Of a stretch of 64,000 nt of DNA, positions 32,941 to 64,000 are shown one piece after another. The notes beneath the pieces are model-generated. The model ran no database searches. It had not been told where the DNA came from and saw only the letters and a list, made by a program, of their open reading frames with translations. This DNA comes from Lepidodermella squamata (Eukaryota > Animalia > Gastrotricha), in assembly GCA_047495785.1 (NCBI GenBank), contig JBLDXI010000023.1:248001-312000 (forward strand), written 5' to 3'. Every line of letters starts with the position of its first letter. Position 1 is the first letter of the stretch. Made by a program: the position numbers and the translations under genes.

Positions 32941-33699
32941 GAGATGGAATCAGCGGATTTCAATCGAGGTTCAAGTCCCAAGGGGGCTTCACAATCAACT
33001 CCCAGCGAGGATCGAAACGTGCCTTGCCGCAGCAATGGAGAGGCACTTTCAACTGGATAAGCGTTACCTTTGCAACACAGAGCCTGGTATTGGAAGACCC
33101 CCGTGAAGTTAGTTGGGCAACAGATATCTGAAGCCCAAATTCAGACCAATGCTAATACTAGTTTACTGCCTACCATTCATTATAGGACGGTTCGGCCGGT
33201 GCAGATATGGCGCAAGCCAAAAAGGCTGATAGAACAATAAAAGCTTTTTAATTTAAATGGGGCAAAATGGTAATATGAACACGACCGAGGGAGGTATTGA
33301 GTGTTGTCCCGTCTAAAAAATATTTAGAGATTAGATATTTGCGCCTCAATTCTCCAAGATTTCCCATTGTTAGGGTTGTCTAACTTGCAGGACAGGACCT
33401 ACCAAATCCTTCTCTAGACCGTTTCAGTGAGCTTGAAAAAGAATTTGCGTGGCAATAAGTTAATTTTCAATTTTCAATAGTTCAATCCAATCTTGGTTTG
33501 GTTTCATATCTTCAGAGAGGGAGTTTTCGAAGTGGCGCAGTATCCTGGTAAAGAAGGCAAATAGAAAAATTTTCGGCGTACTTACGTCTGTTGAACAAGT
33601 TTTTTCCATCTTGATCTAGGTCTCATTTTATTCGGTTACCGGTTACCGGTTTTTTCTCTGCTTTCGTGGGTGTATAGACCAAATCGTTGCCCTGCGGAA

Positions 33700-34450
33700 C
33701 GTCGTGTGGAACAATGCCTCCAATGGAACTCGCCGGCGCTCATCAACTTTGTCGACTTCAAGAAGGCGTTCGTTCGATAGCGTTCACCGCGAGACCTTGT
33801 GGAGAATCCTCCTTCATTACGGCATTCCGGACAAAATTGTTCAACTCGTTGCCATGTTTTACACTGGCTTCGAATGCAGAGTACTGATGGAGGCTGGAGT
33901 GGAGAGCGAGAGTTTTTCAGTCAATTCCGGTGTTAGGCAGGGCTGCATCCTGTCACTGGTCTGGCGATCGAAACAGCTTAGCAAGGCGACCAAGGTGCGA
34001 ATCTAAAATTCCACTGTCAAAGCCGTCTTGTTATATGGCTCGGAGTGCTGGCGGGAGTTGGGGGTTGACGTAAGGAGGCTTGATGCCTTCCACAACAGAT
34101 GCCTCCGACGAATCCAAGGCATCTTCTGGCCGAGGATCGTTTCGAATGCGGACATTTGCAAATGTCGCCCTTTATCGGACGAGATCAGACTCCGTCGACT
34201 TCGCTGGCTGGGACATGTGCTGCGAATGGATGCCAGGCGCACTCCCCGAGTTGCCCTTCGGTGGACGCCACAGGGCAGCCGGGCGGTGGGGCGGCCAAAA
34301 ACTACGTGGCGGGCCACCATTGAAAATGACCTGCGCAGCATGGGGTTGAGCTGGGGATCGGCTCAGGTCTTGGCCAAGGACCGGGACCAGTGGAGAAGAG
34401 CATGAGAGGAGGCAGTGCGCCCCGCTAGGGGACTATACTGATACTACTGT
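33700..34450 (+). mobile_element. RTE-type LINE 3' fragment with internal deletion
   Basis: INFVDFKKAF..HRETLW, GVRQGCILS, LLYGSECW, RLRWLGHVLRM, GRPKTTW, and a short ACT-rich tail. Confidence 0.85.
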
Positions 34451-34853
34451 CGTATTAAGCTTAGTTGCAGCATTGAAGAATGGATCGATCATACGGGTAA
34501 GAATTATAATCGTCACAGCACATGGTGGGACCGTAGGGGCCATTCATCATGATACCACCACTCCAAGCCTGACAAGCATCTGAGGATGAGAAACACTAGT
34601 GGTCGATGAAATAAAATTCGTATCAGTAGATTTACTCTTTTCATCAGGAACGCAGTGCTTGTTGTCAATAGATTGATTTCTCTGGACTAAAAGCATGGAA
34701 TGAACAAATCGATTAAAATTTTCTGTAAAATTGTTATCTAGTGCAGTGCGACATGTGTTGCCCCGCCAATTTGACACAGCTAATTATTTAACAAAATTCG
34801 TTGATACTATCACCATGTAGCTATAGTATGCGACTATTTGAAATCGTGATAAG

Positions 34854-37139
34854 ATGATGATTCGATCTTACACTTTCCTGCTATACCTTGGATGGTTATT
34901 CCAGATTCAGCAAGCAGAGGTTGAAAAAACACGCGTTATTCGTCAATTGATGGTTGCTTCCGTTAGTGTGGCCGATCCCAGACACACCTTAGCTGGGACA
35001 ATTGCTATGAACTACGTGTTTTCCCGAATAAACAACCGTAGCGACCTGTTACCCGGCTATCGCATTGAACTAGATACTCGAGATGATCTTGCGGGAAATT
35101 TTGCCGTGAAACAAATGATCGCCTTCCGCCGAGAATTCGACCCCGCTGCATCAGAAGACATCATTCCGTCTCCAATAGTAATTGGTTCCACTTTTACAAG
35201 TGGTTGTAAAGCCCTGTCCGCAGTCCACCCGTTCTACAACTCGATTGGGTTAGGTAGCTATTGCTCAGCCCCAATGTTTGCAAACCGCGATAAGCACCGG
35301 AATTTTTACTTGACCTTCACAACTGGAAAAACCACCGCAATCGCAATGTTGCTTTTCATGCGAAGAATTGGAGGCTGGAACCGCTTTGCTATTGTGTCCC
35401 AGCCTACGAACGCCTACGACTTCTCAATGGTCAGTTTCATGTACGAAAAAGCAGCGGCAAATGGTTTCGAAATTCCTTGGTACGACTCCTATATCGAAGC
35501 GGATTTCGGAGAGGCAGCTCGGAGCATTAAACAGTCAGATATTCGAATCATCGTATTAACGTTATCCCCGGCTCTAACAGTTGTCAAATTCCTTTGTGAA
35601 GCGTATTTAGCGGGAATTCGAGGGCCAAGATACGGTTTTCTTATGTTGAACTCGATGCTTGCCCCAGCCACAAATGTAGCAAACTGCTCAAGACAGATGA
35701 TTATCGATCAATATGAACGGGCCTATTTGTTCGGACCTGTCCTAAAACCAGTAAATTACTCTGCTGTGACAGACCTCGGTTACACAGCATTGGAATTCGA
35801 GCAAGCGCTATTCCGACTGGCAAATGCTACATCAATTGAGTCAGTTTTCGTTGGCTATGTACTTCACGACATTGCTCTGAAAGTTGCAATGGTTCTCTAC
35901 GAAACTGAAAAGCGGCTTAGAGCGTTCCACAATTTATCGCTGATCGATTATCTAAAATTCCCAGAAACTATTGGTCGGGTATCTAATGAAGCGATGGTGA
36001 ACACCAAGGTGAATGGGGTTAGAATTGGACCAATGTGGTATGGCTCCAAAGGTGAAGTCAAAGGAGAAATCGAAGCCATTTCAACGTTCAAGCTTTCCTC
36101 TGGAACACAGGATATAGCTTTCGTCACGCAGAAACATGACAATTTAGAGGAATTCGAATTCGATCACTATCAATTACAGCAAACTAGTAACATGAGTTGG
36201 CCAGGAGGTTTGAGACCCAAAGATCGCGCCTCAACATCAGCAATTACTTCAGAAATCTCCCCAACAGCTGCAAGCATCTGCTGGGCGTTGACTGTAGCTC
36301 TTACGCTCTTTCAACTAGGAGGATTTATTGTCATTATTTTGAAATCGGCGGATTACAAGTTCCTGAAACTTGTCGGCCTGACCGGTTGCCTACTGCTAAA
36401 TGCCTCTGCTTTGATATTTTCCATCAACCGCAATCCTACATCTGTTGCTCTAGCTGTTTCTTCTGTTTTTGCTTTGTCTTTTGGGGCAACCATAACTTTC
36501 AGCGTCAGTTCCATGCGCATTTTTGTCTTGAAGAGATATGTATTGAATACTGCTAGAAATCGGCTTGAGAGTAGAATTTTCTCTATTCAGAGCAAAATAT
36601 TTCATGAAAAAAGATCTGAACGGAAATCGGCGGTGGAAACCGTAAATATCGTATCACCGAAGAAAATTGACAAACTGGTTTCGCTAATTAGTTGTTTTCC
36701 CATTGCATTGATTTTACTTCTTTTGGTTGCTTGGATCTCGACACAAAACATGGCGTGTATGAAAAGATTGGCTTCTGAACCCATTTACCATATAGATCTT
36801 GACTTGGTCACTGAAACCTGGATAATTCAATGCCCGATTCGAGATTGGAAAATTTTAGCTTCAATAATTTCCGCGAATTTTTCACTGGTATTATTCGCGC
36901 TGGTTGTAACGTTCCAGTTACGGAATCTTTCCTCTGTTTCAAGTCGTTTTCGAGAATTTTGGGCGAGTTGCATCAGTGGGGTCATTAGTGGAACCTTACC
37001 TATTGCCGGGGCTCTGTTGGCACTGGCAACTGCTAACGCGCCCCTACTACAGCAGATAGTAATGGCTTTTGCGATCATCGTGATATCCGGACTCGAGTCA
37101 GTCGTTTGGATCTATCCCTGCTTTTTGAAACTATTTTGA
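34854..37139 (+). CDS. Intronless GABA-B-like class C GPCR, paralogue of 23371-25629
   Basis: 761 aa ORF sharing exact blocks with the minus-strand receptor (TTGKTTAIAML, WYDSY.EADF.EA, RIGPMWYGSKGEVKGEIEA, WIYP). Confidence 0.9.
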   Translation: MMIRSYTFLLYLGWLFQIQQAEVEKTRVIRQLMVASVSVADPRHTLAGTIAMNYVFSRINNRSDLLPGYRIELDTRDDLAGNFAVKQMIAFRREFDPAASEDIIPSPIVIGSTFTSGCKALSAVHPFYNSIGLGSYCSAPMFANRDKHRNFYLTFTTGKTTAIAMLLFMRRIGGWNRFAIVSQPTNAYDFSMVSFMYEKAAANGFEIPWYDSYIEADFGEAARSIKQSDIRIIVLTLSPALTVVKFLCEAYLAGIRGPRYGFLMLNSMLAPATNVANCSRQMIIDQYERAYLFGPVLKPVNYSAVTDLGYTALEFEQALFRLANATSIESVFVGYVLHDIALKVAMVLYETEKRLRAFHNLSLIDYLKFPETIGRVSNEAMVNTKVNGVRIGPMWYGSKGEVKGEIEAISTFKLSSGTQDIAFVTQKHDNLEEFEFDHYQLQQTSNMSWPGGLRPKDRASTSAITSEISPTAASICWALTVALTLFQLGGFIVIILKSADYKFLKLVGLTGCLLLNASALIFSINRNPTSVALAVSSVFALSFGATITFSVSSMRIFVLKRYVLNTARNRLESRIFSIQSKIFHEKRSERKSAVETVNIVSPKKIDKLVSLISCFPIALILLLLVAWISTQNMACMKRLASEPIYHIDLDLVTETWIIQCPIRDWKILASIISANFSLVLFALVVTFQLRNLSSVSSRFREFWASCISGVISGTLPIAGALLALATANAPLLQQIVMAFAIIVISGLESVVWIYPCFLKLF

Positions 37140-37150
37140 GCAAAAATGTA

Positions 37151-38575
37151 TTATTTCTTCAGTGAATATCGTAATAAGGTTAGCAATATAGTCGATAAGA
37201 AAAATAAACTTGTTAACAGGTGATCAAGAACAATCAGTCTAAAATTTGTCCACTTCGAGTAGAATTCATAATGACTGGAATGGAAATTCGATGCCCTGGG
37301 TAGATGGCATTGCCCGAAACTGGCTGGCGTTAGCTGTTCGTAGACTTTCGGCTCCTTATCGTCCTCCCACAGCCTCTTGCATGCTTTCAATAAAGCTTCG
37401 TGAATCAGGATTTTAAAAGCTGCGATGTCGTACTTCAGTTGCCATTCGAAATATTGCTGAACAAGATGTTTACTGCTGGGCTTTGAGAGATTCTTCATAA
37501 GTTGGACCAAGTCGGTCAAACTAGCAAAATCTCTGACGTCAATGAATGAAGCGGGAGGCATGACAGTTTTGTAATCAGCTCCACCTAGAACAATAGGTAT
37601 TAAACCAAATTGTTTACTGGCCAGCAACCCTCTTTCCGCTTTTTCTGTGGTGTAGTTGTCGCAAATTGAATTTTCAAAAGACAAATAGAACCGGTAATTG
37701 AATAACTCCTCCTCTGCTAATTGAAAACCACTGCATTTTCCAAAGACGTCGATACTGAGGCCTAGTGAAACAAGCTCAGCAACAACAGACTCACGATCAC
37801 TTTCGGATCTAATGCAAAAGGTTATTGATTTTTGTCATTTTTATCAAATAAAGATGCAAACCTGCAGTTGCTAACAATCCATAAGGCGTCCTTTTGTCGA
37901 GTGGAGAACATTTCTGCAAAATGTTCTATTCGAAGCTTCAAGTTCTGCTGAAAGAACTCGTTAGTTAAAGAATCCTGCGGGAAAGGAGCTGCCTCCCAAT
38001 ATGGTACATGAATGTCAGAGCGTTCCGAATAGCTCATAGTCCAGTTGAACTTGTAGTGGGACATGAATTCCCAATCTATTGCGTCTCTAACATTCACTTG
38101 CGGTTCGAGGTTGAAGAAAACAAAACGCTGCCATGGATCTCGACTATAGGGCATATCGAACCGATTGATATCCAGTGCGTGAAATAAAACAGCATCGGCC
38201 CTAGGTAGTTTTGAGCGGTCGATACTCGCGGCACAGTGCAATAAAGAAGACTGATTGTTCAAAGACACAGTCAGCATAAAATCCTCATCTTTAGGCTGAT
38301 CTCGCCAGTAAAGCCATGGCTTAGCACCAAACCTAATTAATGCCATTCTGAAAAGTACTAGGAATGTTTGCACGCTCTTACCAATCCGTCCACAGTAACA
38401 TTATTTTGATTTCTTCGGTAGATTGGCTGCGAACGAGGGGATCTGAAGTTAGGAAATAGCTGCGCAACCTGTTCGCAGCTTGAATCAAAGTCAATCGATC
38501 GTATCGATAAACCACAATGACAAAAATCATCGTGAAAAATGCGGTAATGACATATTTTTGATGAGATCGGCGCAT
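37151..38575 (-). CDS. Alpha-1,3-fucosyltransferase (glycosyltransferase family 10), 3 exons
   Basis: Exons 38575-38382, 38332-37862 and 37808-37151 are in phase. N-terminal TM, ADAVLFH, FNWTMSYSERSDI, WIVSNC, YRFYLSFENSICDNYTTEK, PIVLG, SFIDVRDF. Confidence 0.92.
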
Positions 38576-39519
38576 GCGGGAATTAACGGCGAACCCGCAT
38601 AATCTCATCAATGATTTTAAAACTGAATGAACATTTAAGAAATTTGCACGCGTCAACTGTTGAAATGTTTGTGCCGCCAGATTAAAGCATAGCACATGTG
38701 TTTCCTGTTCTTATGCGGGCTCTTGGCAGTTTGTAGCCGGTCGGGAACAATGCCTATATAGCTAAGCTTTAACACGCTATGAGAGCTCTCGAGATAAAAG
38801 CTATTTTGACTGCGCGCATTTCATTATTATACTCGGTACAGCTTCACATATATTGCGTTTCGTGTACATTAAAAGTGACTGTGAATAACAGTTTCAGACT
38901 TAGAGTTAGTTCATAAATACAAACGCAATATTTTCCAATAATTGAGGCTAAAATTGATACGAGAAAAGTCATGAGACGTAGCTCATTTTGCCCAATTAAA
39001 ATAGTTCAAACCATTTTTTCTCACGATGCTCAAAATTCTCGCATCGTGAGGGGCTCTCCAGATGGCAAAACACCTTCCACATGCTATTCGAGAGGCGGTT
39101 TTGCGACGAGTCTATATTGTCAGCTTCTGAACGATGCCTGCGAGCCACGCATGAGAAAAGCATGGTGGTATGGTAGTGTTATCCGACTAATTGGTATTTC
39201 GTCACGAGCTGTCGATTTCTGTTGTTGGAGCTGTTGGATTCCGGCACGGATTCCGGCCGGGTGTTCAGTTCGGTTTTCAGCTGATTCGGTTCGGAGTTAG
39301 GTAAGGTAAGTTGAGCTACACAGTTGAGCGAATAATTTGAGCGCGAATTTTAAATTCACCCTTGTCAGATGATATTAATAAAATGTTATTTTCTCATGTT
39401 ATCTATTTTATGCTCTTTTCGCTATCATTGTGCTATTTGTTGACCTTGACCGCAGAAATTGCGCGGGCTTTATTTCAATATGGGGTTCTTGAGCATTTTT
39501 TCATGAGGGCTGAGTCATG

Positions 39520-40660
39520 ATGCAACCTGCCTCCAACGACGAAGCGCCTGAAAGAGCTGGAGTACGCGGACGATCTGGACTTCCTCCTCGACACCAGAAG
39601 TCAAGTCGATGCCACAGAGAACTTAACAGTGAAAACTCTTGCCGAGTGGAACCTTCAAGTGAACGTGGCGAAGACGGAGAAAACGCACGTCTTCAGGAGC
39701 ATGAATCGAAGACGGAGAAAACGCACGTCTTCAGGAGCATGAATCGAAGACGGAGATAACGCACGTCTTCAGGAGCATGAATCGGCCGAAAGCTGGCGCA
39801 AAGTCAAGAAACTGGGTAGCCTTCTAGGTGACTCCGAAGACATGGCGTATCAGCCTCTCCTGGGCAGCGTTCGGCAAGCTAGATGCAATCTGGCGATCGA
39901 ACATCGTATTAGTCGACAAGAAAATCGGCATATACCTACAGAGCCAAAACCAAACCAAAACCAAACCTCTTGTACAACAGCGAAACATGGGGGCTTACAT
40001 CTACGATGGAGCAGAAGCTCAATGCCCATCACAGGGATCAGCTCCGCAAGATTTTGGACATTATCTACCCGGACACCATTTCCAACGAAGACCTATACCA
40101 TGAAACGAGCGAAGAACCACTGTCCTTGACTGTAAAGAGGCGAAGGTGGAGACTATTCGGCCATATCCTACGGCTACCGGCGTTCACCCCCGCTCAGGTC
40201 GCCATGGACCAATACTTCGAAACACTCGGTCAACCCTTTCTTGGGAGAGGCCTGATCACATTGCCGAAACTCCTCACGAAAGATCTCCACGAAACCTTTG
40301 CCTTAAATATCGCCTTTCAAAACGATCATGACTACATCAAGAGACAGCCCTGGGTCCCCAGTCTGAACTGCCACAAAGACCTCGTCCATCTGAGGGAGCT
40401 GGCCAGCAACAGAACCTGGTGGCGAGAACTGGTCGAAAGAATCTGTGCCTCTGGTGTGGAAGCGGCGAAACCCTGAACTGGGTGGAAAGCCGTAATAATC
40501 ATCATCAGCTGAGTCATGAGGCGCCTTGGGAGGGGCCTAAACACCCTGCTGAAAGTCCTCACGAAAGACCTTCAAGAAGTCTTCGCTTAACAAGTCGCCT
40601 TTCAAAAACGATCATGACTACACCAGCGACAGTCCTGGGCCCCCAGTCTCAACTGCCACA
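39520..40660 (+). mobile_element. Degenerate RTE-like LINE 3' fragment with a 38-bp triplication at 39671-39784
   Basis: LEYADD-like motif at about 39557-39575, KKLGSLLG, LYNSETW, RRWRLFGHILRL. The 3' segment is partially duplicated (40230-40380 versus 40520-40660). Confidence 0.8.
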
Positions 40661-44300: not shown

Positions 44301-47300
44301 TATGTTGACCATATTTTAACTGCTTTACTTTAACTTTGGTGCTTATATGTCGCGGAAAGCCAAGATCCTACATAGATCAATTATCATAATATTAAGGTTG
44401 TTGACCGGTTTAATTGCAGCGACCTACCTTACAAGCTTGAGAATAATGCAGGTCTATCCAACAAAAACCCGAAATATTACAGGATAATATGATGTAATAT
44501 TCGGGTGAATATCATGGGTGAATATCACGATTAATATCAGCTTGAAGGCTAGCAGGCCAGAGGCGCGTTCAAAGACCGGAACAGCGGGCTGGAAGGCGAA
44601 TATACATCGATATCCACCGATAACACTCGGATATGGTTGTTATCCGGCGTCATGAGTCATCCAATCCGGATAACCGGTAATTCGCCGGCCACGTTGATCT
44701 CACTGACAAATCAGAGCATTTATTGCTCCAATCACGCGCAATCCACCCATTCAATCTTCATACAACACGCGCACACATACGCACCCGCTGCGCACCTCGA
44801 CACGTACCCCGCGCGGCAACTGAGACAGTTCGCCGTGTTGTACAGCCGAGGGATCAAGGGATTATCTGCATTCGAGTGTTTACACGCCGGTTTAGCTACT
44901 AGCTGCGTGAAGAGCCGGACCGTGTCCGGTCATTAAACTGGGTCGCCATAAACGCGCTACCTACAGCTACAACAACAAATCGACAGCTTACAACTTATCC
45001 TAGGATTTTTTTTTCAAGAAATCAGCAATATGCGATATTATTTTCTATTATCTATACGTATGCTATATGACGAGCTATCCCCCAGAATAACTGAGAAACG
45101 TCAAGCGATTTTGGCCCCGTCTTATTTTCAAATTTCATTTGAAACGAGGTGTATCATAATTATAAGCCTCTGTCTTCTATAGTGACTATGAAGGTGGAGA
45201 TATATCTATAGGGCGGAGACCGCTTGACGGGTCTCAATTCCCTGGTCTTAAAAATGCAGTTAGCCATTAGCCCTAACGATCGGTTGTAAGATTTCTCATC
45301 AGGAAATACCATTTCAGCCTTAGGACTAATTTCAAGTAATCTGAACTGAAAGATGCGTCGACGACGGGCCGCTATCTTCCGCTTCCATTAAACTATTCGC
45401 ATATTTGGAAAAAAGGTGATCTAGCATTCAAGCCGAGAAAACCAGCATTCACGCATTGACCGCTGTTTTATTTTAAGGCGCGGACTTGGGGCGCACATTT
45501 GGATTTTGTGGGCGGCGATTACGCAACAGGGGCGACGTTATTTACTATGTGTGCGCACTTATTTAATTTTGGGGCGACGTTTAAAAAGGGGCGCACTTAT
45601 TTAATTCTGGGCGACAGATTTGGTTTATCCGTTTGTTTATTTTGGGATTATTTCCCTATTTTCGGCAAATTCGAACAATTTAAAATCCGATTTCGCAGAT
45701 TCGACGATTCATGAAATCGGCAATTTGTTAAAATATTTTTTTCTATTCCAGGAAAAGAAGAAAGTTCAATATGTCGTTCGAAGTACGGCGGATATCGCGG
45801 CTGAAGGCGAGTACCGGCAGCGCGGCGGAACGCGATCAAACGCCTCCGACTCGGCGATCACCTCCGTCAAAGTCATCGATTTAACCGGCAAAGAGAAGGT
45901 CGTCTACTCGGGCTACTCGTCGCTAGCCAGGCACCACGTGATCCCGGACGACGAGCGACAGCTCGATTCTGACGAAGCAGGGCTCAACTACTTCGACGTG
46001 CCAGAATTACGCCACAATTTGAGACTGCTGATCGGCCAGGCCGAAGACGACGTGATCGACAATTTGAAAACGAGAGATCGAGAAAAGGACCAAATCGCCG
46101 TATTGGAGCATGATAAACAGCGGCTGGACCAGGTTTTGATCGATGAGGAGAGACAAATCGCTCAGTTACAACAAATCGTGACCCTGGTCAATAAACTGGA
46201 CGATGCGACGTCGTTGGATGACGCGATTTCTCTCATTTCCGACCTGCGGATCGATTTCGAGAATGAATACGTCATGTATGGCCTCGAGCGGCTGTTGCAC
46301 CCGGTTTCAGAGCCACTCCTCAAAAATTCGCTATCAACCTGGGACCCGCTTGATCGCGACCAGAAATCGTTGAATTTCGACTCGTTGGCTAAGTTGAAGC
46401 GAGCTTTCAGTGAATGTGATAATTTGCCAGCTTTCGATTCGCTGATTTGGGAACTTTGGGTGCCGCCGGTTCGCCAGGCTATCATCAACCGGTGGAACCC
46501 GCGTGACCCCGACATTTTAGTTGATTTATTCGAACTATGGCAACCGATCCTACCGACTTGGATCTGGGATAACATTAGCGATCAATTTTTGATGCCGAGA
46601 ATTTTGGCCGAGGCTGAAAATTGGAACCCAGTCACCGATGCGTTGCCTATCCATCAGTGGATCCACCCGTGGCTCGGGTTGTTGGGCGACAAATTAGAGC
46701 CGGTCTACGTTCCGATTCGTCAGAAAATCGGAGCAGCTCTCGCGAATTGGCACCCCTCGGATCCTTCCGCGAGAATTCTACTCCAATCTTGGCTGCGAGT
46801 CTGGTCCGACGGCCACATGCGGTCTTTCGTTCTGCAGCATATCGGGCCGAAACTGACTCGGCTGATGCAAGACTTCGTGATAAACCCCCGCCAGCAGCAG
46901 TTGGACGCCTGGAAATGGGTGTTTGATTGGTTGGAAATGATGCCTCATCCGTTTTTTGTCACCCTACTCGATAAGCATTTCTTCCCGAAATGGCTGCAGT
47001 GTTTAGCGGCTTGGCTCGATGCGAGTAACACCGATTACCAGGAGGTTACGAAGTGGTACCTAGGGTGGAAAAGCAGCATCCCCGTTGCGTTGGTTGAAGA
47101 GCCGAATATCAAGGATAAATTAGGCCTGGCTTTGACTATGATGAATCAGGCGATTACCGGCGGCAGGGCAGAGTCGGTTTTGGCTGCGGCGTCCTACCCG
47201 CCTCAAATGCCGTATCAGCAACCGTCAATGCCTGCGTACGCCCCGCCCCCGCCTCCTCCTCCGCCGCCGAGTGTACCCCTCAGTTTCAAAGAAATCATCG

Positions 47301-47535
47301 AACGACGGGTTTGTTCCGCTAATTTCTCGCGTCATTTCGTGCTTCAAATTTCAATTATTTTTTTTAGGCTGAAGCTTGTGGCTTGGTTTTCATGCCTGCA
47401 CAGCGGAGTCTTGGCACTCAGCAAATGTATCAACTTGGCCGCGTGATTCTCTATATCGATCGAAATGTCGTGTTTGTGTCGTCGAACGGCGCTTGGAAAC
47501 CGGTGTCTCTCGAAGAACTGTTTTCACTAGCCTGA
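41306..47535 (+). CDS. TFIP11: Tuftelin-interacting protein 11 (Ntr1/Spp382/Sip1 spliceosome disassembly factor), 6 exons
   Basis: Exons 41306-41563, 41621-41694, 41750-41813, 41863-42081, 45752-47308, 47368-47535. TIP_N motifs KEESIYGMWA..ADYTRPVNFISGG, G-patch [45 protein letters not shown], and GCFC motifs WNP..D..PIH.WIHPW, WHPSD.SA, FFPKW. Confidence 0.95.
42760..43646. mobile_element. Intronic TIR element (about 110-bp inverted repeats)
   Basis: GTCAGCTAATTCCTGTTTTTGTCAGAAGTATCG...ATTTATCAGCTA (about 42786-42870) is the reverse complement of about 43536-43620. Exact termini are uncertain. Confidence 0.75.
44077..45622. mobile_element. Intronic TIR element
   Basis: CAAATCTGTCGCCCAAAATTAAATAAGTGCGCCCC at the left and GGGGCGCACTTATTTAATTCTGGGCGACAGATTTG at the right, with subterminal repeats. 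Confidence 0.75.
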
Positions 47536-49474: not shown

Positions 49475-50211
49475 ATATGTCATATATAAAGTCGACAATT
49501 GTGAAATGTTGACAATATATAACATAAATAGCCATTTAATGTGTATAAAATGCCACCCCTGTAAATTGCCATGTTGACCACAAGGTGAAATCCACTCCGA
49601 GGAATCCGAATCTGAACTCCATTGTGAAACCACTGGTAAGTTGAACCTTGGCGCGCACGCTGATTGGTCAATTTATCGTTGCTAATGACTCCGGAATGAA
49701 ACATTTCCGTCGTGCGATCCACTAATAAATTATTTTATATTTATGTAAAAAATGACCTTGCCACACCCTCTGCCCGGTTTTCATTGACCACGAGCGTAAA
49801 CTCCATATTAATCGTGGTAAATTGCTGCGGCAAAAATCACTTGTTGCAAACAATTTTATGGATCGCACGACAGAACGTTTCATCCGGGAGTCATAGCAAC
49901 GATCGATTGACCAATCAGCGTGCGCATTGGATTGGACTTTTAAGTGGTCACACAATGTCATTTTCCCGATCACGGGAAGTAATTGGCCAAAAATCGATAA
50001 GAAATCGATATCGATTTTCGATAATCGAATTTTACGAAATTTGGGTAATCGCTATGAATTTGACGATATCAGATTCGGATTCCTCTGAGTGGATTTCACC
50101 TTGTGGTCAACATGGCAATTTACAGGGGTGGCATTTTATACAAATTAAATGGCTATTTATGTTATATATATTGTCAACATTTCACAATTGTCGACTTAAA
50201 ATGTGACATAT
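49475..50211. mobile_element. TIR element (about 140-bp arms) carrying a nested insertion
   Basis: 49475-49615 is the reverse complement of about 50069-50211. Confidence 0.82.
49620..49957 (-). mobile_element. 338-bp non-autonomous element with CATTGTG...CACAATG termini (inverted copy of 61370-61707)
   Basis: Same length as, and near-identical to, the reverse complement of 61370-61707. TIR consensus CATTGTG(A/T/G)(A/G)ACCACT. Confidence 0.88.
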
Positions 50212-51112: not shown

Positions 51113-52672
51113 TCATGACATGACCGTAACCTGTGGGTGTTCCTCAAAGTATGACCTCTCAACGTTGGAGTGAAACGTCCAGGTCGACTCTCCAACCTTT
51201 GAAAGTACGTTTGCTGAAGTCATCCTTTCTCCAATAGCATCAATCGTCTGGACATTGATGGGCGTACCAGCCTTCTTCAGATGTAGTACGACATCTTTGA
51301 CGGAGCAAACTGATTTCGCATTTATGCATTCAAAGAAGGCTTGGACGATAGTTTCCTCTTCATCAGTTTTCCAACATTGTTTCACGTGATTTCGAACCTG
51401 TGTAAATAGCGCCTTCTTCACGTCTATAAAACACGTATTAGTGTTTACATATATAGAAGAGCAAAATACAAGTGAGTACCTTGAAAAGATGTTCCCTCTA
51501 TCAGGGCAGTAGAAACACTGATCAACATTAGCAAACGTCCACCGACAAGGGCAAAGACGCGCGAGTAGAGCGTACCATCAGTGTTCACCACGCCACGTTT
51601 CTGAAGGTACTCGAACACTTGATCTTGATTGATATCGCCTACGCAATACAACTTGCCACGGGAAAAGGCACTGCTGCCTATTGAATAAATACAACAGTTA
51701 GCTGAATGACTGAAATGAATTGACAGGAAATAAACGAACCCGTAATTTGCTGAGGCGCCACGCCATCGGATGATACAAATACAGTAACGAATTGACGGCG
51801 GTCAATGGCGCGTTTTGCGCCGTCTTGAAGCAGTGCTAACATTTTTGGATGCTCTTTTGTCAGACTATTCACGTTGTCGATGACAAGAACAGGTACTTTA
51901 TGATATTTCGCCTTGTACCACTTCGCCGTTTCTCCGAACGCACGGTAAACAGCCTGCCAGTTTCCCTTATTCCCTATAGAAGAAAAATAACAGCAAATAC
52001 AACAGCGTGAAGTCATGCTAGTGACTTACATGGCTCATCATTAGCTACTTCCTTCTCTCTAAAAATTTGTTTGTTTATGAATGCAAACAATCCGCTGGTA
52101 TGATGCTCATAGTCAGTAGCCTCGGACAAAGCCAAATAGAATTTCGAGCCATCCTCAGGGACATCCACATAAATCACGCCGCTGCCAACAGTTCGACACG
52201 CTTTCATAACCGCAGTCGTCTTGCCTGTGCCATGCTCTCCAGTAATGAGGAAATATTTTTCAGCTGCGACCGGTGTTGATGGCGTTATCATCTTTTTCAA
52301 ATCCTTCTCCAACTCTGGACGATCAATCAAAACAGTGTCTTCTATGACTAAAGATGCGCCAGAGCCTTGCTCTAAACGATGTTTCAACGCTGCCGCATCC
52401 TTATATCCAACATAGGCGACATAGGCGTAGCTGAGTGGGATACTACCAAAAACAAACACGACAACAGTACCGACAAGTTTGCCCATTATGGCTCGTTTGG
52501 CAAAGTCAAGCCAGGCATTCTTAGGTGGCACGGCTGACAAGGAACGCCGGAAAATGATGAATGAGTTGTGACTCGTATTAAGCTTTGGCGGTACAAGAGC
52601 AAGACGACGGTCGACACGAAATCGTTTGGTCGCCAGTGATCGCGTCAGTAGGCGCAAGTTTCGTAGAATCAT
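51113..52672 (-). CDS. P-loop (AAA+/archaeal-ATPase-like) protein with putative mitochondrial presequence and one TM, 4 exons
   Basis: Exons 52672-52030, 51973-51740, 51677-51480 and 51423-51113 are in phase. Walker A GEHGTGKT, Walker B VLVIDNVN, then VFVSSDG, SAFSR..VGD, LVGGR. The N-terminus is Arg/Leu/Ser-rich with few acidic residues, followed by a hydrophobic segment. Confidence 0.85.
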
Positions 52673-53329
52673 TTTCAATTAACTGTATATCTATGAATAT
52701 ATCTGAACTTATGAACCGACCAAAAGAGATACTCAATACCCACAACATCCAGCGTAGTTTTTCATGTTTCACTTGACAGAATTGCTATCTACGATCGAAG
52801 ATGTTTCATATGACTACTGTAGCAGGGGCTTTAATATTATGATGTCCAAGAATGAAATCTCACAACATTATGATATTGATTAGAAGGTAAAGGCTCTCGT
52901 AACGGGGTAAAGGGTAAACGATTTTGGCAAATAACACAACAACGGCTAGAGATTATAAATGGGTCATTGTGGTGTTTACTTATTGTAGTGAACTTTAGTG
53001 TAGAACACAATGTGTCAAACATTATTAAACACACAATTCAGCAGATAAATGCACAGACATAAAAGGTCATGAACACTTGAAGCAACCAAGACACCAAACA
53101 ACTTGAATCAGCAATCAAGTTAGAAAACGGAATGATGTGCTGAAAATTCAGTTTCACTCAGTTCCACTTGCCAAGTGCCACGTAAGAACGAGAATTCGCC
53201 TGACACAAAAATATCAAGCGCACGAAAGAATGGATGGATTTAAAGCCCAGTCATCAATTATGGTGGTATTCATGGGCTGAGGGTTGAGATAATGGAGCAG
53301 CCCGATCATCACATTTGATGGTTTTCACC

Positions 53330-55655
53330 GGTGCTATCGATAGCTATAGGAGAATCTGTAAAAAAATAACTTCGTAGAAAATAAAGGTATCCTGGCTTCG
53401 GAGGATTGGAGTTTGCGCGCTTGGAAACTGCGGTTGTCGTTCCAGGCAGTGGTGCCGCGATGGAAAAATGTGCGTTGCCCGGTGGTGTTGGTTGGTACTT
53501 TCCACAGGCAGACAGTCCGAGTCCTTGGAGCGTGTTTCAGTGCAGGTGCCGGCGTCCCTCGAGAAGGCTTCAATTAGCAAGTCGGGCGCTTCGTCGTGCA
53601 GGATCTACCACATACTTGAAGTACGTTTTATGACGTGTACATTCCTTCGTCCATGGAGCGAGAGCCATTGTAGGTCCCGGAGTAGTGGCTCAACAATCTT
53701 CTTCTTCTTCTTTCAAAAACAATCTTTCTCTTTCTGGATGGATGGATGGATTATGCTATCTGCAACTTGTTTACCAGGAAACAACCCGCTCGACAACTGC
53801 GCAACGCTCACCTCACCTTCGAGCTTCCTAAAGCTCGAATCGACTACGGCAAAGCTCGTCTCAGCTACCGAGGACCGGCTTTGTTCAACTCTCTGCCCAT
53901 CTACTTTCACTGCACACAGCACAAACCTATTGGCATTCTCGAATACGACGGCACTTTGCCTGATTGTAAATGCGGCATGAAAGCCTGCTCAACCGCCAAC
54001 GATTGCCGTCAACTTGTATATAAACATCTTTTAAATTGTTGATTATTTTGTCTATTTGTTGATTTAATGTCCTATTTTGTTTTGACTGATGACCTGGCCT
54101 GAACTGACTTCGATTCTCTGCACGAAACATTTTAGAAATGCACCTTTTCCACGTCGAGCTCTCAACTATGGGATTATGCTCAATAAAATTAATAAGCCCA
54201 ATCGCTAGTTGCCCGACGATATGCTTGGGCTTCAGTTAGTAAGTAATAACCCGATTCACCGCTGTGGCGATGTTTTACACGGGTCAAGTGGCACAAGAAG
54301 TAGAAAAATAGATTACGGATCTAATAAAATAATGTCTTCGAGTTGTTCTTTAGCGAATTCGACGACGCAGGCAGCTTGACGCGTGCTTTTCGACGAGTTC
54401 ATTTGCCGGATGAAGTCGGTTGCGCTGTTCCACGCTGCCGTGCCACGATAGAGAACGGTTCGTTGACTAGTGGTGTTGCTGTGGTCAACAGGAAGATATC
54501 CTTGGGCTTTTTGAAGTGTCTCCCTCGCGGCTTCTCTCTTTGTGAAATCAGCGATGAGCAGGTCGGGTGCTTCACCATGCAGAATCTGCCAGACCAGTTT
54601 GATGGTGTGGACTTTTCTTCTTCCCGCTAGCGAAATCCAGCGGAACCCTCGGAACCAGCTTCGAGGAGGATATCGCAGTAGCCAACGCGAGATCCGATGA
54701 GCCCGTTGTAGATGGCCTTCCGAGCATCCAAAGGAACGCCGTTTCGACCAGCTAGGCGGAGAGCATAGGCACCACTGCGGCATTTTGCTGCAATGTTTTC
54801 GACATGGTTTTCAAACGTGATGCGGTAGTCAATTTCGAGCCCGAGGAGTTTCATTGTAGGTTGTGGAGCGACAAGAATACCGTTGATGTTCACTTCTGGC
54901 AGTTCGTTGTCAATTTTAAGCAATTTCGGAGCCAAAAACATTATCTGAGTTATCTTCTCGTTCAATTTCAGGCTGTTTGACCGGAGCCAAGTTGCTACTG
55001 AGTACTGAGGTTAGTTGTATTTCGAGTTTCGCTTTGACTGAGGAAATTGAGTCACCAGTGGCGTAGATAGTGGTGTCATCGGCGTAGATGAAGATTCCGC
55101 AGTCAGGGTCAGAGATTAGATTTCGCAGTTCGTTCACGTAGATGGTAAACAGGAGAGGCCCTAAACCGCTTCCTTGAGGGACGCCGTATGTATGTATGTA
55201 TGTATGTATGTATGTATAATAGCGTTGGATTCGCACTAAGGCGGTCTTCCATCCAACGGACGCAGATTGGCGCGTCGAGGTAAGGTGGCGAGTTACCTCT
55301 TCTTTGTGTAGACGAAATCGTCTACATATTCTGCTTTCAGCAGTATTTCCAGAAGTTGGTCTCTGAGGATCTTCGGGTTTTCGGAAGACCTGATCGATGG
55401 CGGTAAGTCATTCCACTTGCTAGCAGCACGAAATCGAAAGCTGAGACGAGCTGAGTACTGAGCTTGTCGAGGGATTTCGACGCCATCAGAGCTGCGAAGT
55501 CTGGTTTTGTGATCGGACGATGGTTTGTTGATCAAGTTTTTGATGAGGGCAGGTGCTTGAGAGTGCAAACATTTCCAAACTAGAGTAATTTCGTGGATTA
55601 AGCGTTTCCCGTTGATTTGTTTAGAAGCGAGCGTAGCGAGCTTCCTTTTCTTCAC
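53330..55655. mobile_element. Cluster of L2/CR1/Crack-type LINE 3' fragments with simple-repeat tails
   Basis: Minus-strand [33 protein letters not shown]; repeated 3'-end motifs ([34 protein letters not shown] on plus); (TATG)n at 55187-55216, (TTC)n and (GATG)n near 53698-53750. Confidence 0.75.
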
Positions 55656-56895
55656 TCTGTAGGGGGTCCGAGAGAGGCTGTAAGGGGGTCCTATGAGAAC
55701 AATTATTTCGCAAAAATTTAGAACTCAAATAATTAACAATTTTAAATAATAAAAAAAATGGTACTTAATTTTTTTTTAATGTGGAAACCAAAATTTAAAA
55801 TTTGCGCGCTATATCCGCGTCCATGGTAGCCTTGGCGTTGACCCAAGCAGCTTTGCCGGCTAGTGAATTTCTGATACGATGATGCGGGATCATCTTTATG
55901 CTTGCTAAATTGCTATCAACTAAACACTGCTTGATGCTTCTGATTACTATTAATGATTTCTGGTGTTCACTCATCTCCGTTATGACTGAATGGGCGTCAT
56001 TTAAATCACTGCTTGCTGATTAGTTATGATTAATTCAGAATTGGTGATGCAAGTGAAGGCAATATTGCCTTTTTCGATTGTGATTTGTCAATTAGTCAAT
56101 TAGTCAATAAAACCTTTCACTTATTCAATAAGCTGTTCAGTGAACTGATCTTATGATTATTTTCGTTCCTTCTAGAGTTTCAAACTGAAAAGTATGATCT
56201 ACAACATGGTGGCTGGAGTCGAGGAACAGGAAGATGGCTCTTAATTATTTGCGGCAAATCATGACAACCATCAGGTGAGGATTGTGTAGTTATGTTTGCT
56301 AACATTCACTATGGAGGAGGAGGTTGCAGGGGGGTTGGGAGGGGGGGCTGGCGAAAAACTACTAGCGAAAAAGTTGAATGATTATCGGCGGTTGGCCTGC
56401 TCTAGGAGGGGTTGGAATTTTTAATGTATATGTAATGACATTCCCCATTTATAACAGTTTTTCTTCTTGGTCTACAAGTTATTACTAGATTGCTCGCCGA
56501 GTTCAGTAGTGAATTTCAAGTGATATAACACTAAAAATCATTGTTTTGATTTGCTGTGGAATGGAATTATTATGCACAGAGTAATTAAGCATTTCATATC
56601 ACAGAATTCAATAATTTTTTATGTTCTTATTTTACTATTCAGGCTATCGGATTTCAGCTAAATATTGTTGTTCACGTTACGGCATCCTGCACTTTTCGAC
56701 TGGAATATGGTTGCTGAATGGCAATAATGTGTGATTTGCATTATAATTTGACGAAATCGTGCGGTATATGTTCGGCAAGGGGCTGTTCAAAGCTGTTCAG
56801 AGCGACATTAATTATCAATCTTATTTCATTTCACATAATGATGACTTGATAGCGAATAAAAGAAAATAAATCTTTCAATTTCATGTTTTGTTAGA

Positions 56896-59800
56896 ATGGA
56901 TCCTTCACTTATTATACCGTTTTTTGGCGTTCAATACTATTCTGTGTTTGATTTGCGCAATTTCATGGGAGTTAGCGAAGATGAATTGAATGAAATATTC
57001 GTTGCAAATCCGCAAATCCGTCTACTCGAGTTGTCTCGTAAGCAATTATCAGACATTATTAAGCGGCGTTTGGCATCAGTCGAGTCCATGAGAAAAGGGC
57101 ATGGAGTTATAATTGAGGTTGAGAGCGCTGGAATGGCCATTCGAATCAAATTTGGTACCAAGTCGCCTCCTGAAGTGTTTGTTAATATTAATCAAATTGC
57201 CGCCACTGCTGGAACCAATCCCGCGAATATATCACCTCCTGTTTTGGCTTCCAAGATTTCTCTTCCTCGGCCAGGGATTGTAATTTCGACTGGGTTAGAG
57301 ACCTGTCATCAAACTTCAGTGCCTGTGGTCAATGGCTATTGCTGGTGGTGTGTTACCTGATGTGGTAATGGTGTCGCCTGAAAATATCGCTGTTCCGCCC
57401 CCATATAATAATGATAATAGTTCAGCGGCCGCTGTTGTCAATATGAATTGGCGCTGTTCATGCCTTCCACCTGAATTGCCTCTTACTCGTTTACGTAACG
57501 AGGGTAATTCTTGCTATTTGAATGCTGTCATTCAAATTTTGACGCGTTGTCCTGCGTTTGTTCAGTGCGCCTGGGAACATTCTACCTTGCAACCTTGCCT
57601 ATTGTGTTAGTTATACCCGATTCTGTCGAGAAAAAGTGTAATAAATTATCCTATTTCGCAGGTTCGGATGTAAACATCGGTCCAGATCATTGCTTAGCGA
57701 ATAAGTTTTGCGCTCATGTGTTAACCCATCTTCAATTTGGCGAATTTGGCCGCAATGTCCTATCGGTTAGGCCTTTCTACGAATCGGTGATTAATCGCTA
57801 CTCGAACATGTTTATTGTTGGCCGGCAGGAGGACGCAGAAGAATGCCTTATTCTAATTTTGGATGACTTTGCTTCCATGTCAATCGACCCTGTTGCTGCA
57901 AACCCTTTCGTTTTTAAATTCAAACGAGAAACGAATTGCCGTGAATGCCACATGCAGACAACATCAGATGTAGAACAGCTAAACAGCGTAAATGTCTCTA
58001 TTTCGAGGGTCAGCGTCACGTCAGCTGTGCGATTATCTGATCTCCTGAGCGACCATTTTTCAGTTCCGGAACGTTTGGATGGATATCGGTGCGATGGCTG
58101 TGGTCGATTTGGCAGTTGCGATTCGAAAATTAATTTGTCTCAGTTACCTAAAAGTCTCATATTATCAGTCAAAAGATTCGACAGACAAGGTTTAAAAGTC
58201 CATCAGAGCATCTCTTTTCCGGAAACCTTGAATATGGCTCCCTATTTCCCTGGTGCGGTACAGAAACGTCTTTATCGCTTGGTTGGCGTAGCGAATCACC
58301 GTGGAGATTCGGTACATGGTGGCCATTACACCTGCTTTGTTCAGCAGCATGATGAGTCATGGTGGCTTCTAAATGATAGTAGTGCTCCTGTCAAGTTTCG
58401 TAATTTCGCAACAATTGCTAACGAAAGCGCCCTGAGCTGCTATATATTTTGTTATGAAAAGTGCAATGACTGCCCTACGTCTTCATTGCCTTTTCAAATT
58501 CCTGAAAATGCGGCTGTACCGCTCGAAATTGCTGTAGCACCTACTGAAAATGTTGAAACAACGGTTCCAATGAAGAAGCCGTCTTTATTGAAGCCATCGT
58601 CAAATTTCAAGCCAAGTCGGCGTGGCCCCGTGACTTTCATGGATGCTATTCCTGAAGAAATTTGTGGCAATTCAGACCTGGGCTCGCTGTTTTCTATCGT
58701 TGAACGGCTCGATCCTGAAAATTGCGACTACACGCTTATCGCAGATAGTTGTAGTCAAGATGATGTTGATTTATTTCGAGCAACTATTATTGCTGAAAGC
58801 GGTGGAAATTCATTACCAGGCCAAGTCGATGCTGTTCCTACCAAGTCTAAGCCGAAAAAGCGGAAATCGAATAAACCCCAGGTTGTTGTTGTTGAAACCA
58901 TTCCAGATGAGCCCAAGCATGCTTTTCCCAACTTGAATAAGAAAGAATCGCATAGCTTAGAAATGTTTGCTCGGACAGTTAAGTCAAGCACTGTTGATGA
59001 CGCCTGTTGCCCCATTTGTGGTCAGGGCTATCCGGGTCTTAAATTAGTGAAGGAAGCTGGACATTGCTTATGTTGCGATCGAGATAAAAATCCCATAAAG
59101 ATGTTTTCGGCTGAAAATCTCATGCTTCCTGGTGACGATTCTGATTGTCCGGAAGCCCTATCCTGTTTATGGGAACTAGAAGAGATGCTTTTAGCCCGTG
59201 TCCACCCGCAAATAAATTATTATATGGTGAAAGGAGGTCAACTACGTTATTCGAACCATTGCATCTCGTTCGAAAGAGAAAGTGCGAAATTTTTCAAAGA
59301 GCTTCCGATTGATATCGCGCAGGCTCCGGTCGTTTTAGTTAGAAAAAAAGTTGGATCTGGCGATAAGGCACGTTCTTTTTATCTTGAAGTTCGAGGTTGG
59401 GCTATCGAACGGGCTGCTCGTCACTTAATAGCAAGGGATCCCAACTATCGCGACTGCGTGTTGAGTACCGAAAACTTGGCAAAGTTGCCATATCAACGGG
59501 GCGATGTTAGTCACTTACTGCCGACCTTGGAGGTGCCCTTTGATTTCAACGAAGATGACGCTGACGCAGCTATGGAAGGACAATATGCAATGGCCGAAAA
59601 TTATGGGAACACCAAAACAATTGAACGGCCAATTGACGTTTCCGGGCTGGAAAGCGCGATTGTTGATGAATTTATCGGCATTGAATCCTGCAACGTGTCA
59701 GCGTTTCCAGGCGAATTACGAATTAACCGCGACCGGCTTATTGTAGAGCAGCTGCAATCGCGTGGGGTTCGAATTGACGATGCTGATTTGTCTAATCCCG

Positions 59801-62800
59801 GTGATTTGAACAATGCTCAATTGACTGGCGGTGATGGCACCAGAACTATCGAGTGGCCACAATGTCAAAACAAGCCGTTAAACGACCTTAACTTACAACT
59901 TAACAACATCTCGATTTTTTCGGGCGCTTTTCCCTGTTTATTTTATAAACCGGATAAAAGTGGCGACTTTTGCACCGATCGGACTCGGCAACCAACTCTT
60001 ACGGCTTGGGCGCGCCATTTAATGCGGTTGAGAAATGCAGCTCGATTTCGTCAACATTCAAGATTTAGGTACCTAATCCGTAACATAATTGTCCGAAAAC
60101 AAGCTCTTAATCAAGCGGATATGTTCATGCTTCAGCATCCGGATGTGAAAGACCTGACCAAAGCTGAATTTCAGCGAAAAGCTGCCGAAAATAAGTCAAA
60201 ATTACTGCGCGAAATATCCTTATTTGGCAGTAAGATCGGCGGTACGACAGCTTATTGGCGGAACTGTTGCAGCGAATTGCATGATACGGTTAAGCAAATA
60301 GGCTATCCGACCTTCTTTTTCACCTTTTCCCTTGCTGATATGCAGTGGCCAGATTTGCAAAAGCTAATGCCACTTCGGCCATGTGATAAGCCTAAAAAAG
60401 GTTCCAATTACGAAGAGGCGATGTTACGTTTGCGTGCTAATCCGGACAGAGCTGGTTTGTACCTACATAGCCGAGTTTTAGCGATGTTACGAACTGTCAT
60501 GCCAGTAGCTCTCGGAGAAATTGTTGATTTTTGGTTCCGATATGAATGGCAGTCTAGAGGTTCCGCTCACGTACATGGATTCGTATGGATAAAGAATGCG
60601 CCAGACATTCGCAAATTCAACCTTGAGAAGCCCGATGATCGGAAAACACTCGAAGATTATTTTGGGCAATATATTACCCATGTTTTTCCTTCGACGGAAC
60701 GTAAAGGAAGTCCAGCCGTAAATGCTCTTCAAATCGATGATGCAAAATTCATGGAATTGGTTCAAAATGCGCGTTTTTCTCAAGAGGGCAAAACGAAAAT
60801 GTTGGCTGTCTTAAATGATATTTTGCACCGGGCTCAGCGGCATGACAAGTGTTCGCCTTATTGTCTTGAAATGAAGAAAGGTCGAGTGGTTTGCCGCTTC
60901 AATTTTCCAAGAGTCATACGTCGTTGGTCTAAAATTGTACGCAACCCCAACAAAAGAAATCGTTGGCAATTCGAGCCGCCACGAAATGACCCTCGACTAA
61001 ACAACTACAATCCATTGATAAGTTTTGCGTGGCGCGGCAACAGCGATATCTGTCCGATCTTTGATGTTGAAGGGTTCCTTCGATACCTCCTGGGCTACGT
61101 TGCTAAAGGTGAAATACTTTTTCTGGAGGCAAAGGGCCTGTTGGACCAAATTTTTGCGGCTGAAATTTCTGAAAATTATGAAGCTGCCCGAATTATTCGT
61201 AAGCTATTCATGAAAACAGCCGGATCTCGTGATTACTCCGCGCAAGAGGTAATGCACCACCTCATTGGTTTACCGCTACATCTAAGTAGTCGAAAATGCG
61301 TCCGAATTAATCTTTACCCGCCTGAAAAGCGCAAAGTTGCTCGACCTCTGAAACGACATTTACAAGTTACATTGTGTGACCACTTAAAAGTCCAATCCAA
61401 TGCGCACGATGATTGGTCAATCGATCGTTGCTATGACTCCCGGATGAAACGTTCTGTCGTGCGATCCATAAGATTTTTTGCAACAAGTGTTTTTTGCCGC
61501 AGCAATTTACCACAATTAATATGGAGTTTACGCTCGTGGTCAATGGAAACCGGGCAGAGGGTGTGGCAAGGTCATTTTTTTCATAAATATAAAATAATTT
61601 ATTAGTGGATCGCACGACGGAAATGTTTCATTCCGGAGTCATTAGCAACAATAAATTGACCAATCAGCGTGCGCGCCAAGGTTCAACTTACCAGTGGTTC
61701 CACAATGTTAACATCCATGTTGAGGGCGACGAAGATGCGTCAATTTTCGCCGGAGATGGTATGGCGTCCAAAAGGGACATTTTGGTATTGTATAAACAGC
61801 GCGATAAGAAATTTGAATTACTTTCGTTATTTGAATTTGCAACGACCTTTGGGTGGCAGAAAAATGCTGCAACTGGTTACAAACTTGTCTTTGGCCCTCG
61901 AGATGTAAATAGCGATCATCAGTCGTTTTTCAGTGCTGAGCTGATCAGAACTCGTGGTGTTGCGTCCCGCGATGTTGCGGCTAATTGTCCCATTGATCCA
62001 GATATTGTCGAGGCCGCGCGCAACCATGGTATCTCTGATGACGCAGCTCTCGCTGAAGTTGAATGTGTTGACGTCGACGCTAATGTAGACGACCAGGTAG
62101 CTGGCATGAAACCGAAATCCTTGAAGAAGGCACGGTCAGATTCGAGACCTTATATTTTAAGAGTTTGGCCGCACGTTGCCATGGATAAAAGTAGTGAGGA
62201 GTACTGTCGTATTCAACTGCTATTATTTAAGCCTTTTCGTGTTGAGACTAGCGTCATGAATGGCTTTCCTAATCATGTTGAAGCTTTTGCTAGTTTCCTA
62301 GCTGAGCAACATATGTTCGATCCTAATTGTGAAGCAGGTCATCAGGCGTTAGATCTTGAAGGGCAAATATTTCAATCAAGTCTGCCGTCGTCTGTTGCAC
62401 CTGATAGCCAGGAAATTGTTCGGCAAAATCAAAGACTTCGCTTCATGAGCATGGTAGTAGCAGCAACAGGGCCTGGAAATTCAATATCTTCGGCGGGTTT
62501 TCATACCGATCGACTTGGTGAACGATTAGATGACGTTGTTAACGATTGGTTAGAACCTGGGCGTTTTTATGGTTCAAACTTGGTTGATCAAATGGTCGCG
62601 TTTATCGATGTCGAAAAAAAGAAGTCCAAAGTTACTGACTCTGATGATGAAAGTGGCGAAATCTCTGATTCAAACGAGCAACAGTCACAGCTTGTAATTC
62701 ATCCTAATGTAATGTTGGACGAGATAAATTATGGTGTTGATATTGATCGTCTGACGCCTGATCAGCGGCGTTTCGTCGACTACGTGTTAAACCATGCGAA

Positions 62801-64000
62801 GAAATCTATTTTAGATGGTGAAGCTTTGTCACCGCTTCGTCTTATTTGCTGTGGGAAAGCTGGGTCTGGCAAGAGTTTTGCCATGAATATATTGGTCAGT
62901 GCAATAACGCGCATGGCTGTTGATGCTCGATGCTCTAAACCCAATTTTCCTGTTGTCCAAAGAACGGCTCCAACTGGTTGCGCAGCGAAATTGATCCATG
63001 GTCAGACTATCCACAATTTTATTGGTATAGTTGGCAATGAGAATTGGAACTCATCAAAAGGCCTTACCCATCTTAGCGATAGCCGGGCGACAAGTTTGAA
63101 ACGAAAATACGCCAACACACGTTATATTCTCCTTGACGAGATGTCTATGCTTGGCTGTCGTGGTATATATGCAGTTCATGACAGGCTAACTCAAATATTC
63201 GGTACAGATAAGGCATCTATTTTTGCGAACATCTCCTTCATTTTGATGGGCGATTTTGGGCAAATTGCTCCAATTGGTGACAACCCGCTTTATTTGGGCA
63301 ATTCCTGTGACCAGCGAAGCATAGCTGGCCACGAAATTTACCTGTCGTTCAAAGCGGCTGTAGTTTTGGAATCTGATATGCGTCAGTCGGGTTATAATAT
63401 CGAGCAAATTCGCTTTCGTCAATTATTGAGCAACATCCGTGAGAACGCTACAACAGATGAAGACGTCAACTTGATTAAATCTCGCCATTTGAACAATCTA
63501 CCGGCAGAAGAACGCTCACGTTTTGATCACGCTATTCGTCTATTTTACAGCCGTAAAGAGGTCGATGCATTTAATTGGACATGTTTGCGATCAAGTGGCT
63601 GTTCAGTAGCTAGGATGGATGCCATTTGCCACGGTGAAGGCTCGAGCAATCGCGCTGCTGATAAAGCGAGTAACCTTGAGAAAACAATTTTTTTGTCCAA
63701 AGGTAGTCGCGTTATGCTAAATTCCAATGTGTGGACTGATGCTGGTTTGGTGAATGGCAGTTTTGGTATTATTATTGATATTATTTACCAAGCGATACGT
63801 GGGGCTGAGCAAATTTCTGGCCCGCCTTCGTTGCCAGTTGCTGTTCTTGTTGAATTTGACGATTATGATGGCCCAGCAATGACGTTGCCTGTTGGAAGAC
63901 TTGGCGAAACTGAGGTAAACCAACGTTTCAATCGCGTTGTACCTATCGTTCCTATCAAGCGCACTTTTAAAATTGGCAACAATCCGGCTCAACTTGAACG
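56896..64000 (+). mobile_element. Helitron encoding USP (C19) deubiquitinase-Rep (HUH)-Pif1 helicase; runs off the window end; interrupted by an insertion
   Basis: USP Cys box LRNEGNSCYLNA (57491-57526), QEDAEE, His box NHRGDSVHGGHY and NDS (about 58295-58380). Rep motifs GYPTFFFTFS, YEWQSRGSAHVHGFVW, YLLGYVAKGE. Helicase motifs GKAGSGKS (about 62853-62876), APTGCAA, ILLDEMSM, GDFGQIAP, MRQ, GLVNGSFG. Intron 57606-57661 and a possible intron 57280-57319. Element termini were not identified. Confidence 0.92.
61370..61707 (+). mobile_element. 338-bp non-autonomous TIR element with TTA TSD (possibly CMC/Chapaev3-like) inserted in the Helitron ORF
   Basis: TTA|CATTGTGTGACCACT ... AGTGGTTCCACAATG|TTA. 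Removing the element plus one TTA restores the Rep-helicase frame. Confidence 0.9.

Follow-up and report, generated by a model that had tools for sequence, protein, structure and literature searches.

Near the end of the 64,000-nucleotide stretch of Lepidodermella squamata DNA analysed here (the window), a putative USP deubiquitinase (DUB) was found fused in frame to the RepHel of a Helitron-like element. On sequence grounds, the ancestral gene product is best explained as one continuous polypeptide, 2,000 aa or longer, in which the USP was followed by a linker, a zinc finger with DUF6570, an HUH Rep and a Pif1 helicase. Judged by these domains, the copy in the window is an HLE2 (Helitron2/Helentron) element of the autonomous type, broken by a MITE. 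Exons and both sides of the MITE were searched, folded and aligned separately, while reading frames and spacings were verified arithmetically.

USP domain and its predicted intron

The USP domain (Pfam UCH, PF00443) is split over two exons, with the catalytic Cys, His and Asn/Asp all present. A possible first coding exon without recognizable domain starts at the ATG 56896 (56896..57279, +) and stays a candidate; a candidate 40-nt GT-AG intron (57280-57319) would bring it into the frame of the Cys box, the alternative start being the ATG at 57332. For this upstream ORF of 128 aa no Pfam match was found, and the Atlas gave weak matches (<0.9) only, pointing to no credible family. Exon A (57332..57605, +; Pfam UCH 6e-6; PDB match to USP1 at 9e-5) contains the Cys box GNSCYLNA, with the catalytic Cys codon TGC at 57512-57514. 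Exon B (57662..58464, +; Pfam UCH 1.6e-27; best PDB sequence match USP36 at 7e-14) holds the rest of the USP/C19 domain, namely QEDAEE at 57826, the finger pairs CREC at 57937 and CDGC at 58090, the His of GGHY at 58324 and the Asn-Asp (NDS) at 58372-58377, and sits in a 1364-aa ORF at 57511-61605.

The frame of the Cys box differs from the downstream frame and stops at 57608. A predicted 56-nt GT-AG intron (57606..57661, +) would join the Cys box to the remaining USP; among 14 GT..AG pairs able to join both frames, this is the one with the best donor (GTTAGT) and the best acceptor (pyrimidine-rich, ending in CAG). The segment is AT-rich, at 34% GC versus 43-46% in its flanks, and its removal leaves a Cys-to-QED spacing of 86 aa, compared with 61-102 in reference USPs. 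An equally good in-phase splice pair was obtained in 78 of 3000 shuffles (2.6%). We regard 57606-57661 as a plausible predicted intron of the USP gene. In run X1 both this intron and the MITE are retained, the pattern expected of genomic DNA, and no RNA run containing the locus was listed.

With the Cys box joined via the predicted intron, the Cys, QEDA and His boxes and the Asn/Asp are all in place, which identifies the domain by its motifs as USP/C19. An alignment-based model of exon B, with the Cys helix outside the model, reached a pLDDT of 79. The modelled exon B has a fingers-palm-thumb fold and was matched by Foldseek to USP30, USP1, USP2 and USP36 at E ~1e-19. The USP domain is thus intact-looking, and a putative deubiquitinase.

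Linker, Rep and helicase

From the His box, one stop-free frame runs through the linker, the zinc finger and DUF6570 into the Helitron Rep, which argues that the USP is not a separate host gene beside the element, and that candidate was rejected. The linker (58465..59007, +), of low complexity with basic patches, is stop-free over the ~185 aa from the end of the USP to the zinc finger; corresponding linkers in relatives measure 74-172 aa. Since none of 20000 shuffles was stop-free, a linker kept open by chance was rejected as well, and the other two frames have 6 and 19 stops. A CxxC..CxxC zinc finger (CPIC..CLCC, 59008-59076) and then DUF6570 (Pfam 2.9e-14) follow within 59008..59481 (+). The Rep (60007..61368, +; Pfam Helitron_like_N 5.1e-27) is an HUH/Y2 endonuclease with motif I at 60307, motif II at 60544-60579 (HVHG at 60568) and motif III at 61084-61107 (YxxxYxxK). 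Beyond the MITE, a post-Rep segment and a Pif1 SF1B helicase (61711..64000, +) match Pfam PIF1 at ~62829-63458 and 2B at ~63693-63779, with Walker A at 62853 and DEMS at 63135; the helicase frame is still open at 64000, so that the last helicase motifs, the C-terminus and the right end lie beyond the window.

DUF6570, which precedes Rep and was named an HLE2 marker by HELIANO (PMC11417382), places the element in HLE2. The best RepHel matches carry DUF6570 too; in trees, which had no HLE1 outgroup, the window Rep forms a long branch. The hallmarks of autonomous Helitron-like elements, Rep motifs I-III of HUH/Y2 type and a downstream Pif1-type SF1B helicase, are present, and the two enzymes share one ORF only in the pre-MITE state.

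A segment at 55621..55863 (+), starting with TT and ending with CTAG, is an uncertain candidate for the left end or for a separate small non-autonomous rolling-circle element. Its TT start coincides with the break-off of a minus-strand LINE fragment, and a related motif was found at 10690. Hairpins at the candidate termini folded no better than shuffles. Two nested LINE fragments (54313-55620, -), one of which ends in a GTAT microsatellite, lie just left of the Helitron. In run X1 the flanks of the MITE in the element show single-copy depth, and no near-identical sister of this element was found in that run.

Inactivation by a MITE

The 338-bp insertion (61370..61707, no strand assigned), bordered by TTA at either end, is a young MITE of high copy number whose long terminal inverted repeats (CATTGTG..CACAATG) are imperfect. 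Its summed depth in run X1 was ~30,000-40,000, versus 40 for the flanks, with loose ends at the borders 61369/61370 and 61707; no empty-site joint was listed in that run. By arithmetic, the Rep and helicase frames come into register once 338 or 341 bases are taken out. Aligned separately, the two sides map in the expected order to intact relatives, with ~20 extra residues. Because of the frameshift that the MITE causes ahead of the Pif1 helicase, this otherwise well-preserved copy cannot make a full-length transposase, a point absent from the preliminary description. That description had named the USP and Rep motifs given above, and all of them were recovered at the positions it gave. It had also claimed an in-frame fusion of a catalytically intact USP upstream of RepHel, as well as a 338-bp insertion between Rep and helicase; the former agrees with the exon-wise Pfam matches and the stop-free linker, the latter with the TTA flanks and the frame arithmetic. 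The HMMER check it had proposed, run exon by exon, returned UCH on both exons, Helitron_like_N and PIF1.

A second copy of the MITE (49620-49957), 97% identical and inverted, is nested in another inverted-repeat element with arms at 49475-49615 and 50069-50211. The flanking repeats are TTA at the first copy versus a possible 2-bp TC duplication at the second, where a PIF/Harbinger Tourist-type element would be expected to have TWA.

Other features of the window

Long class C GPCR-like ORFs (ANF_receptor, 7tm_3) are clustered at 23371-25650 (-), 28014-30012 (+) and 34854-37139 (+), and point to an animal host. A 608-aa ORF with a GCFC domain (TFIP11/PAXBP1-like) lies at 45620-47446 (+), a frameshifted retroelement with zinc knuckle and reverse transcriptase at 5352-9800 (+), and an intron-split P-loop ATPase-like gene with a weak AAA_22 match at 51113-52678 (-).

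Relatives with the same domain order

An exhaustive HMMER search, split by domain, together with a profile search, revealed five public proteins whose one called ORF runs USP-DUF6570-Rep-Pif1 (P0079, P0112, P0126, P0132 and P0163). Since these are five unrelated single-ORF proteins with the same order, the architecture is not peculiar to the window copy, and its uniqueness was rejected; the preliminary description had let its reading depend on further carriers of the USP-RepHel order. The Cys, His and Asn/Asp motifs were found in four of the five, at only 23-32% identity to the window USP over local alignments; from the called ORF of P0112 the Cys box is missing. A word-index search of the USP region against proteins of 750-2390 aa, a search whose reach is restricted by the length window and the word filter, returned one host USP only. 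USP fusions make up 5 among ~150 Rep matches, and most HLE2 relatives were found with no recognizable DUB, which indicates that the DUB is dispensable.

On an unrooted Rep tree whose 37 rows were picked from a quick tree of 95, the six USP carriers stand at four places (four changes needed), and a single clade of carriers is rejected (p-AU 4.5e-7); the window Rep is a long branch there and its own place is unsure. Because the tree is rootless, repeated capture is inseparable from an old capture followed by losses or from domain exchange. The phylogeny against host USPs suggested in the preliminary description was built, with few host rows, and its branching did not settle: a single origin of the element USPs is neither supported nor rejected (p-AU 0.20). 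The window USP has 24-33% similarity to all host USPs, and with such low similarity and a poorly separated USP tree no subfamily or substrate can be read.

In other relatives, the same N-terminal position is occupied by OTU, Josephin, THAP or HET. OTU lies upstream of RepHel in P0036. In P0053 (L006:104-6106), an HLE2 RepHel, the N-terminal domain is a Josephin (Pfam 2.1e-18) with apparently intact Cys, His and Asp motifs. The HELIANO domain table does not include Josephin, nor does the main text of two candidate papers checked, and our literature search yielded no description of it in a Helitron; by its sequence it may represent a fourth class of DUB at this position. P0013, P0014, P0033, P0140 and P0058 are HLE2 RepHel proteins with N-terminal THAP (two named thrips proteins) or HET, and THAP is absent from the HELIANO table.

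Several further observations concern these relatives. The contig of P0132 (L001:1-8249) starts with TT, ends with CTAGT and carries one intron-free USP-DUF6570-Rep-Pif1 ORF of 2130 aa; it may be a whole element with candidate proto-Helentron-like ends. In a run X1 contig of depth 77, a related element joins USP sequence (57917-57952) to DUF6570 sequence (59130-59262); the junction skips 1177 letters, has 22 others between and is net in frame, the USP side comprising only 36 letters. Of the 13 listed DUF6570 differences in this element, 11 are synonymous, which points to purifying selection in the past. The predicted proteins P0008, P0064, P0098, P0107 and P0108, with 3-10 tandem USP domains, some of them identical, are probably joined gene models of USP17-like arrays.

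Possible roles of the tethered deubiquitinase

HUH enzymes bind DNA covalently via a phosphotyrosine, and DNA-protein crosslinks are cleared by hosts through ubiquitin, p97, proteasome and SPRTN-type routes. The covalent RepHel-DNA intermediate would resemble such a crosslink. If the USP stays tethered to RepHel, it could act in cis to deubiquitinate RepHel or other proteins present where transposition takes place, and with a DUB built in the covalent intermediate would last longer. We lean, with some caution, towards a model in which the tethered DUB shields the transposase, most plausibly its phosphotyrosine RepHel-DNA intermediate, from ubiquitin-dependent removal of the crosslink type. The filling of the N-terminal slot by interchangeable DUB classes (USP, OTU, VTD and Josephin) suggests that selection on the HLE2 slot acts on DUB activity, not on a single fold. 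A wider proposal, offered tentatively and with more doubt than confidence, is that this HLE2 'DUB slot' was filled repeatedly and independently by these four classes because host crosslink repair attacks covalent RepHel-DNA, with in-frame USP fusions, missed by intron-blind annotation (getorf ignores introns), as one convergent solution. Fusions in several unrelated Rep lineages, together with the OTU and Josephin fusions, would support ubiquitin-dependent removal as a real host barrier to rolling-circle transposition, and DUB-RepHel fusions may matter for Helitron-based gene-delivery tools. The broken window copy is a poor experimental substrate; P0132 and P0126 are intact single-ORF elements, and P0132 is a good candidate.

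The same fusion might instead act on host targets, so that the USP would be an anti-silencing factor directed at H2A/H2B ubiquitin or at ubiquitin-dependent silencing or defence at donor and target loci. The best solved-structure sequence matches of the window USP include USP36, Ubp8 and USP21, a set with some chromatin-acting members. HLE relatives also carry THAP and PHD (PHD in HELIANO Table S11), but the divergence from host USPs and the poorly separated USP tree described above allow no substrate to be read, and no chromatin-reader domain was found adjoining the window USP. Such a role is conceivable and on the whole rather doubtful, although shielding of RepHel and action on host targets are not mutually exclusive.

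Helitrons capture gene fragments, and the USP could also be cargo taken up from a host that brings the element little or no advantage, or be dead via a frameshift in place of an intron. The scarcity of DUBs among relatives and the shuffles that yield an equal splice pair would fit this, as would the fact that the supposed intron is stop-free in the downstream frame. It is nevertheless unlikely, as the catalytic residues are kept here and in four of the five relatives although divergence has reached saturation, fusions of this kind turn up in several Rep lineages and ~7 kb of coding sequence runs without another stop. Canonical USPs require a ubiquitin-like di-glycine end. With one GG in the window linker and none seen in the linkers of P0079, P0112, P0126 and P0132, and hence no conserved cleavage site, it is very improbable that the USP acts, like some viral papain-like DUBs, as a leader protease and cleaves itself from a RepHel polyprotein, even though it stands N-terminally before a long flexible linker and viral DUBs often process polyproteins (PMC9741609).

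Comparison with known systems

Shielding of RepHel by a tethered DUB, the reading preferred here, has its counterpart in the Helentrons, where VTD (Herpes_teg_N) domains in the ORFs are active DUBs that cleave K48, K63 and K11 chains; it was proposed that Helentron DUBs prevent the degradation of transposition proteins and that Helitrons profit from interchangeable DUB classes (PMC9741609). The VTD Helentrons DrT1 and DrT2 (PMC9741609) share with the window element a DUB inside the RepHel ORF and the stabilization hypothesis, but their biochemically proven DUB is of the VTD class instead of USP/C19. They carry a C-terminal AP endonuclease, a position that in the window element would fall beyond 64000. 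OTU-bearing Helentrons/HLE2 also have a cysteine-protease DUB upstream of RepHel, but of OTU fold; the OTU of Helentrons is a putative DUB, not assayed according to PMC9741609.

The novelty of a USP in Helitrons, implied in the preliminary description, is much lower than it appeared, because PF00443 is already listed as stable HLE2 cargo (PMC11417382). In HELIANO, UCH PF00443 is one of 20 domains carried stably; it is nearly confined to HLE2 and enriched in subgroups c and d (PMC11417382; Table S11, preprint 10.1101/2024.02.08.579435), which come mostly from lungfish and axolotl (PMC11417382); an uncatalogued USP-HLE2 association was accordingly rejected against this 2024 record. Whether the architecture itself was already catalogued, a question the preliminary description had raised, is answered largely in the affirmative: PF00443 is recorded in HLE2, but UCH is placed there with the domains 'encoded in different ORFs', apart from RepHel, and ORFs were predicted by getorf (PMC11417382). 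The HLE2 c/d elements with UCH, as HELIANO tabulates them, are thus like the window element in DUF6570, RepHel and a stably associated PF00443, and differ in having UCH in separate ORFs, whereas the His box and Rep of the window element lie in one stop-free frame. No study dealing with a USP-RepHel fusion came up in our literature searches.

Host USP17/36/42-like proteins share the USP fold, the Cys box, the QEDA box, the two finger CxxC pairs and the His box with the window USP but have <35% identity to it, and the transposase fusion is a feature of the window element. The five fusion proteins share the domain order in one ORF, at ~21-28% identity and in different Rep lineages. While the USP-HLE2 association is already published, if only in passing, the presence of in-frame fusions at the N-terminus in several Rep lineages, as read from these sequences, is a modest addition. 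In conclusion, our verdict by analogy is that the USP-RepHel element of the window would work like the DUB-bearing Helentrons, with its class given as HLE2 by DUF6570.
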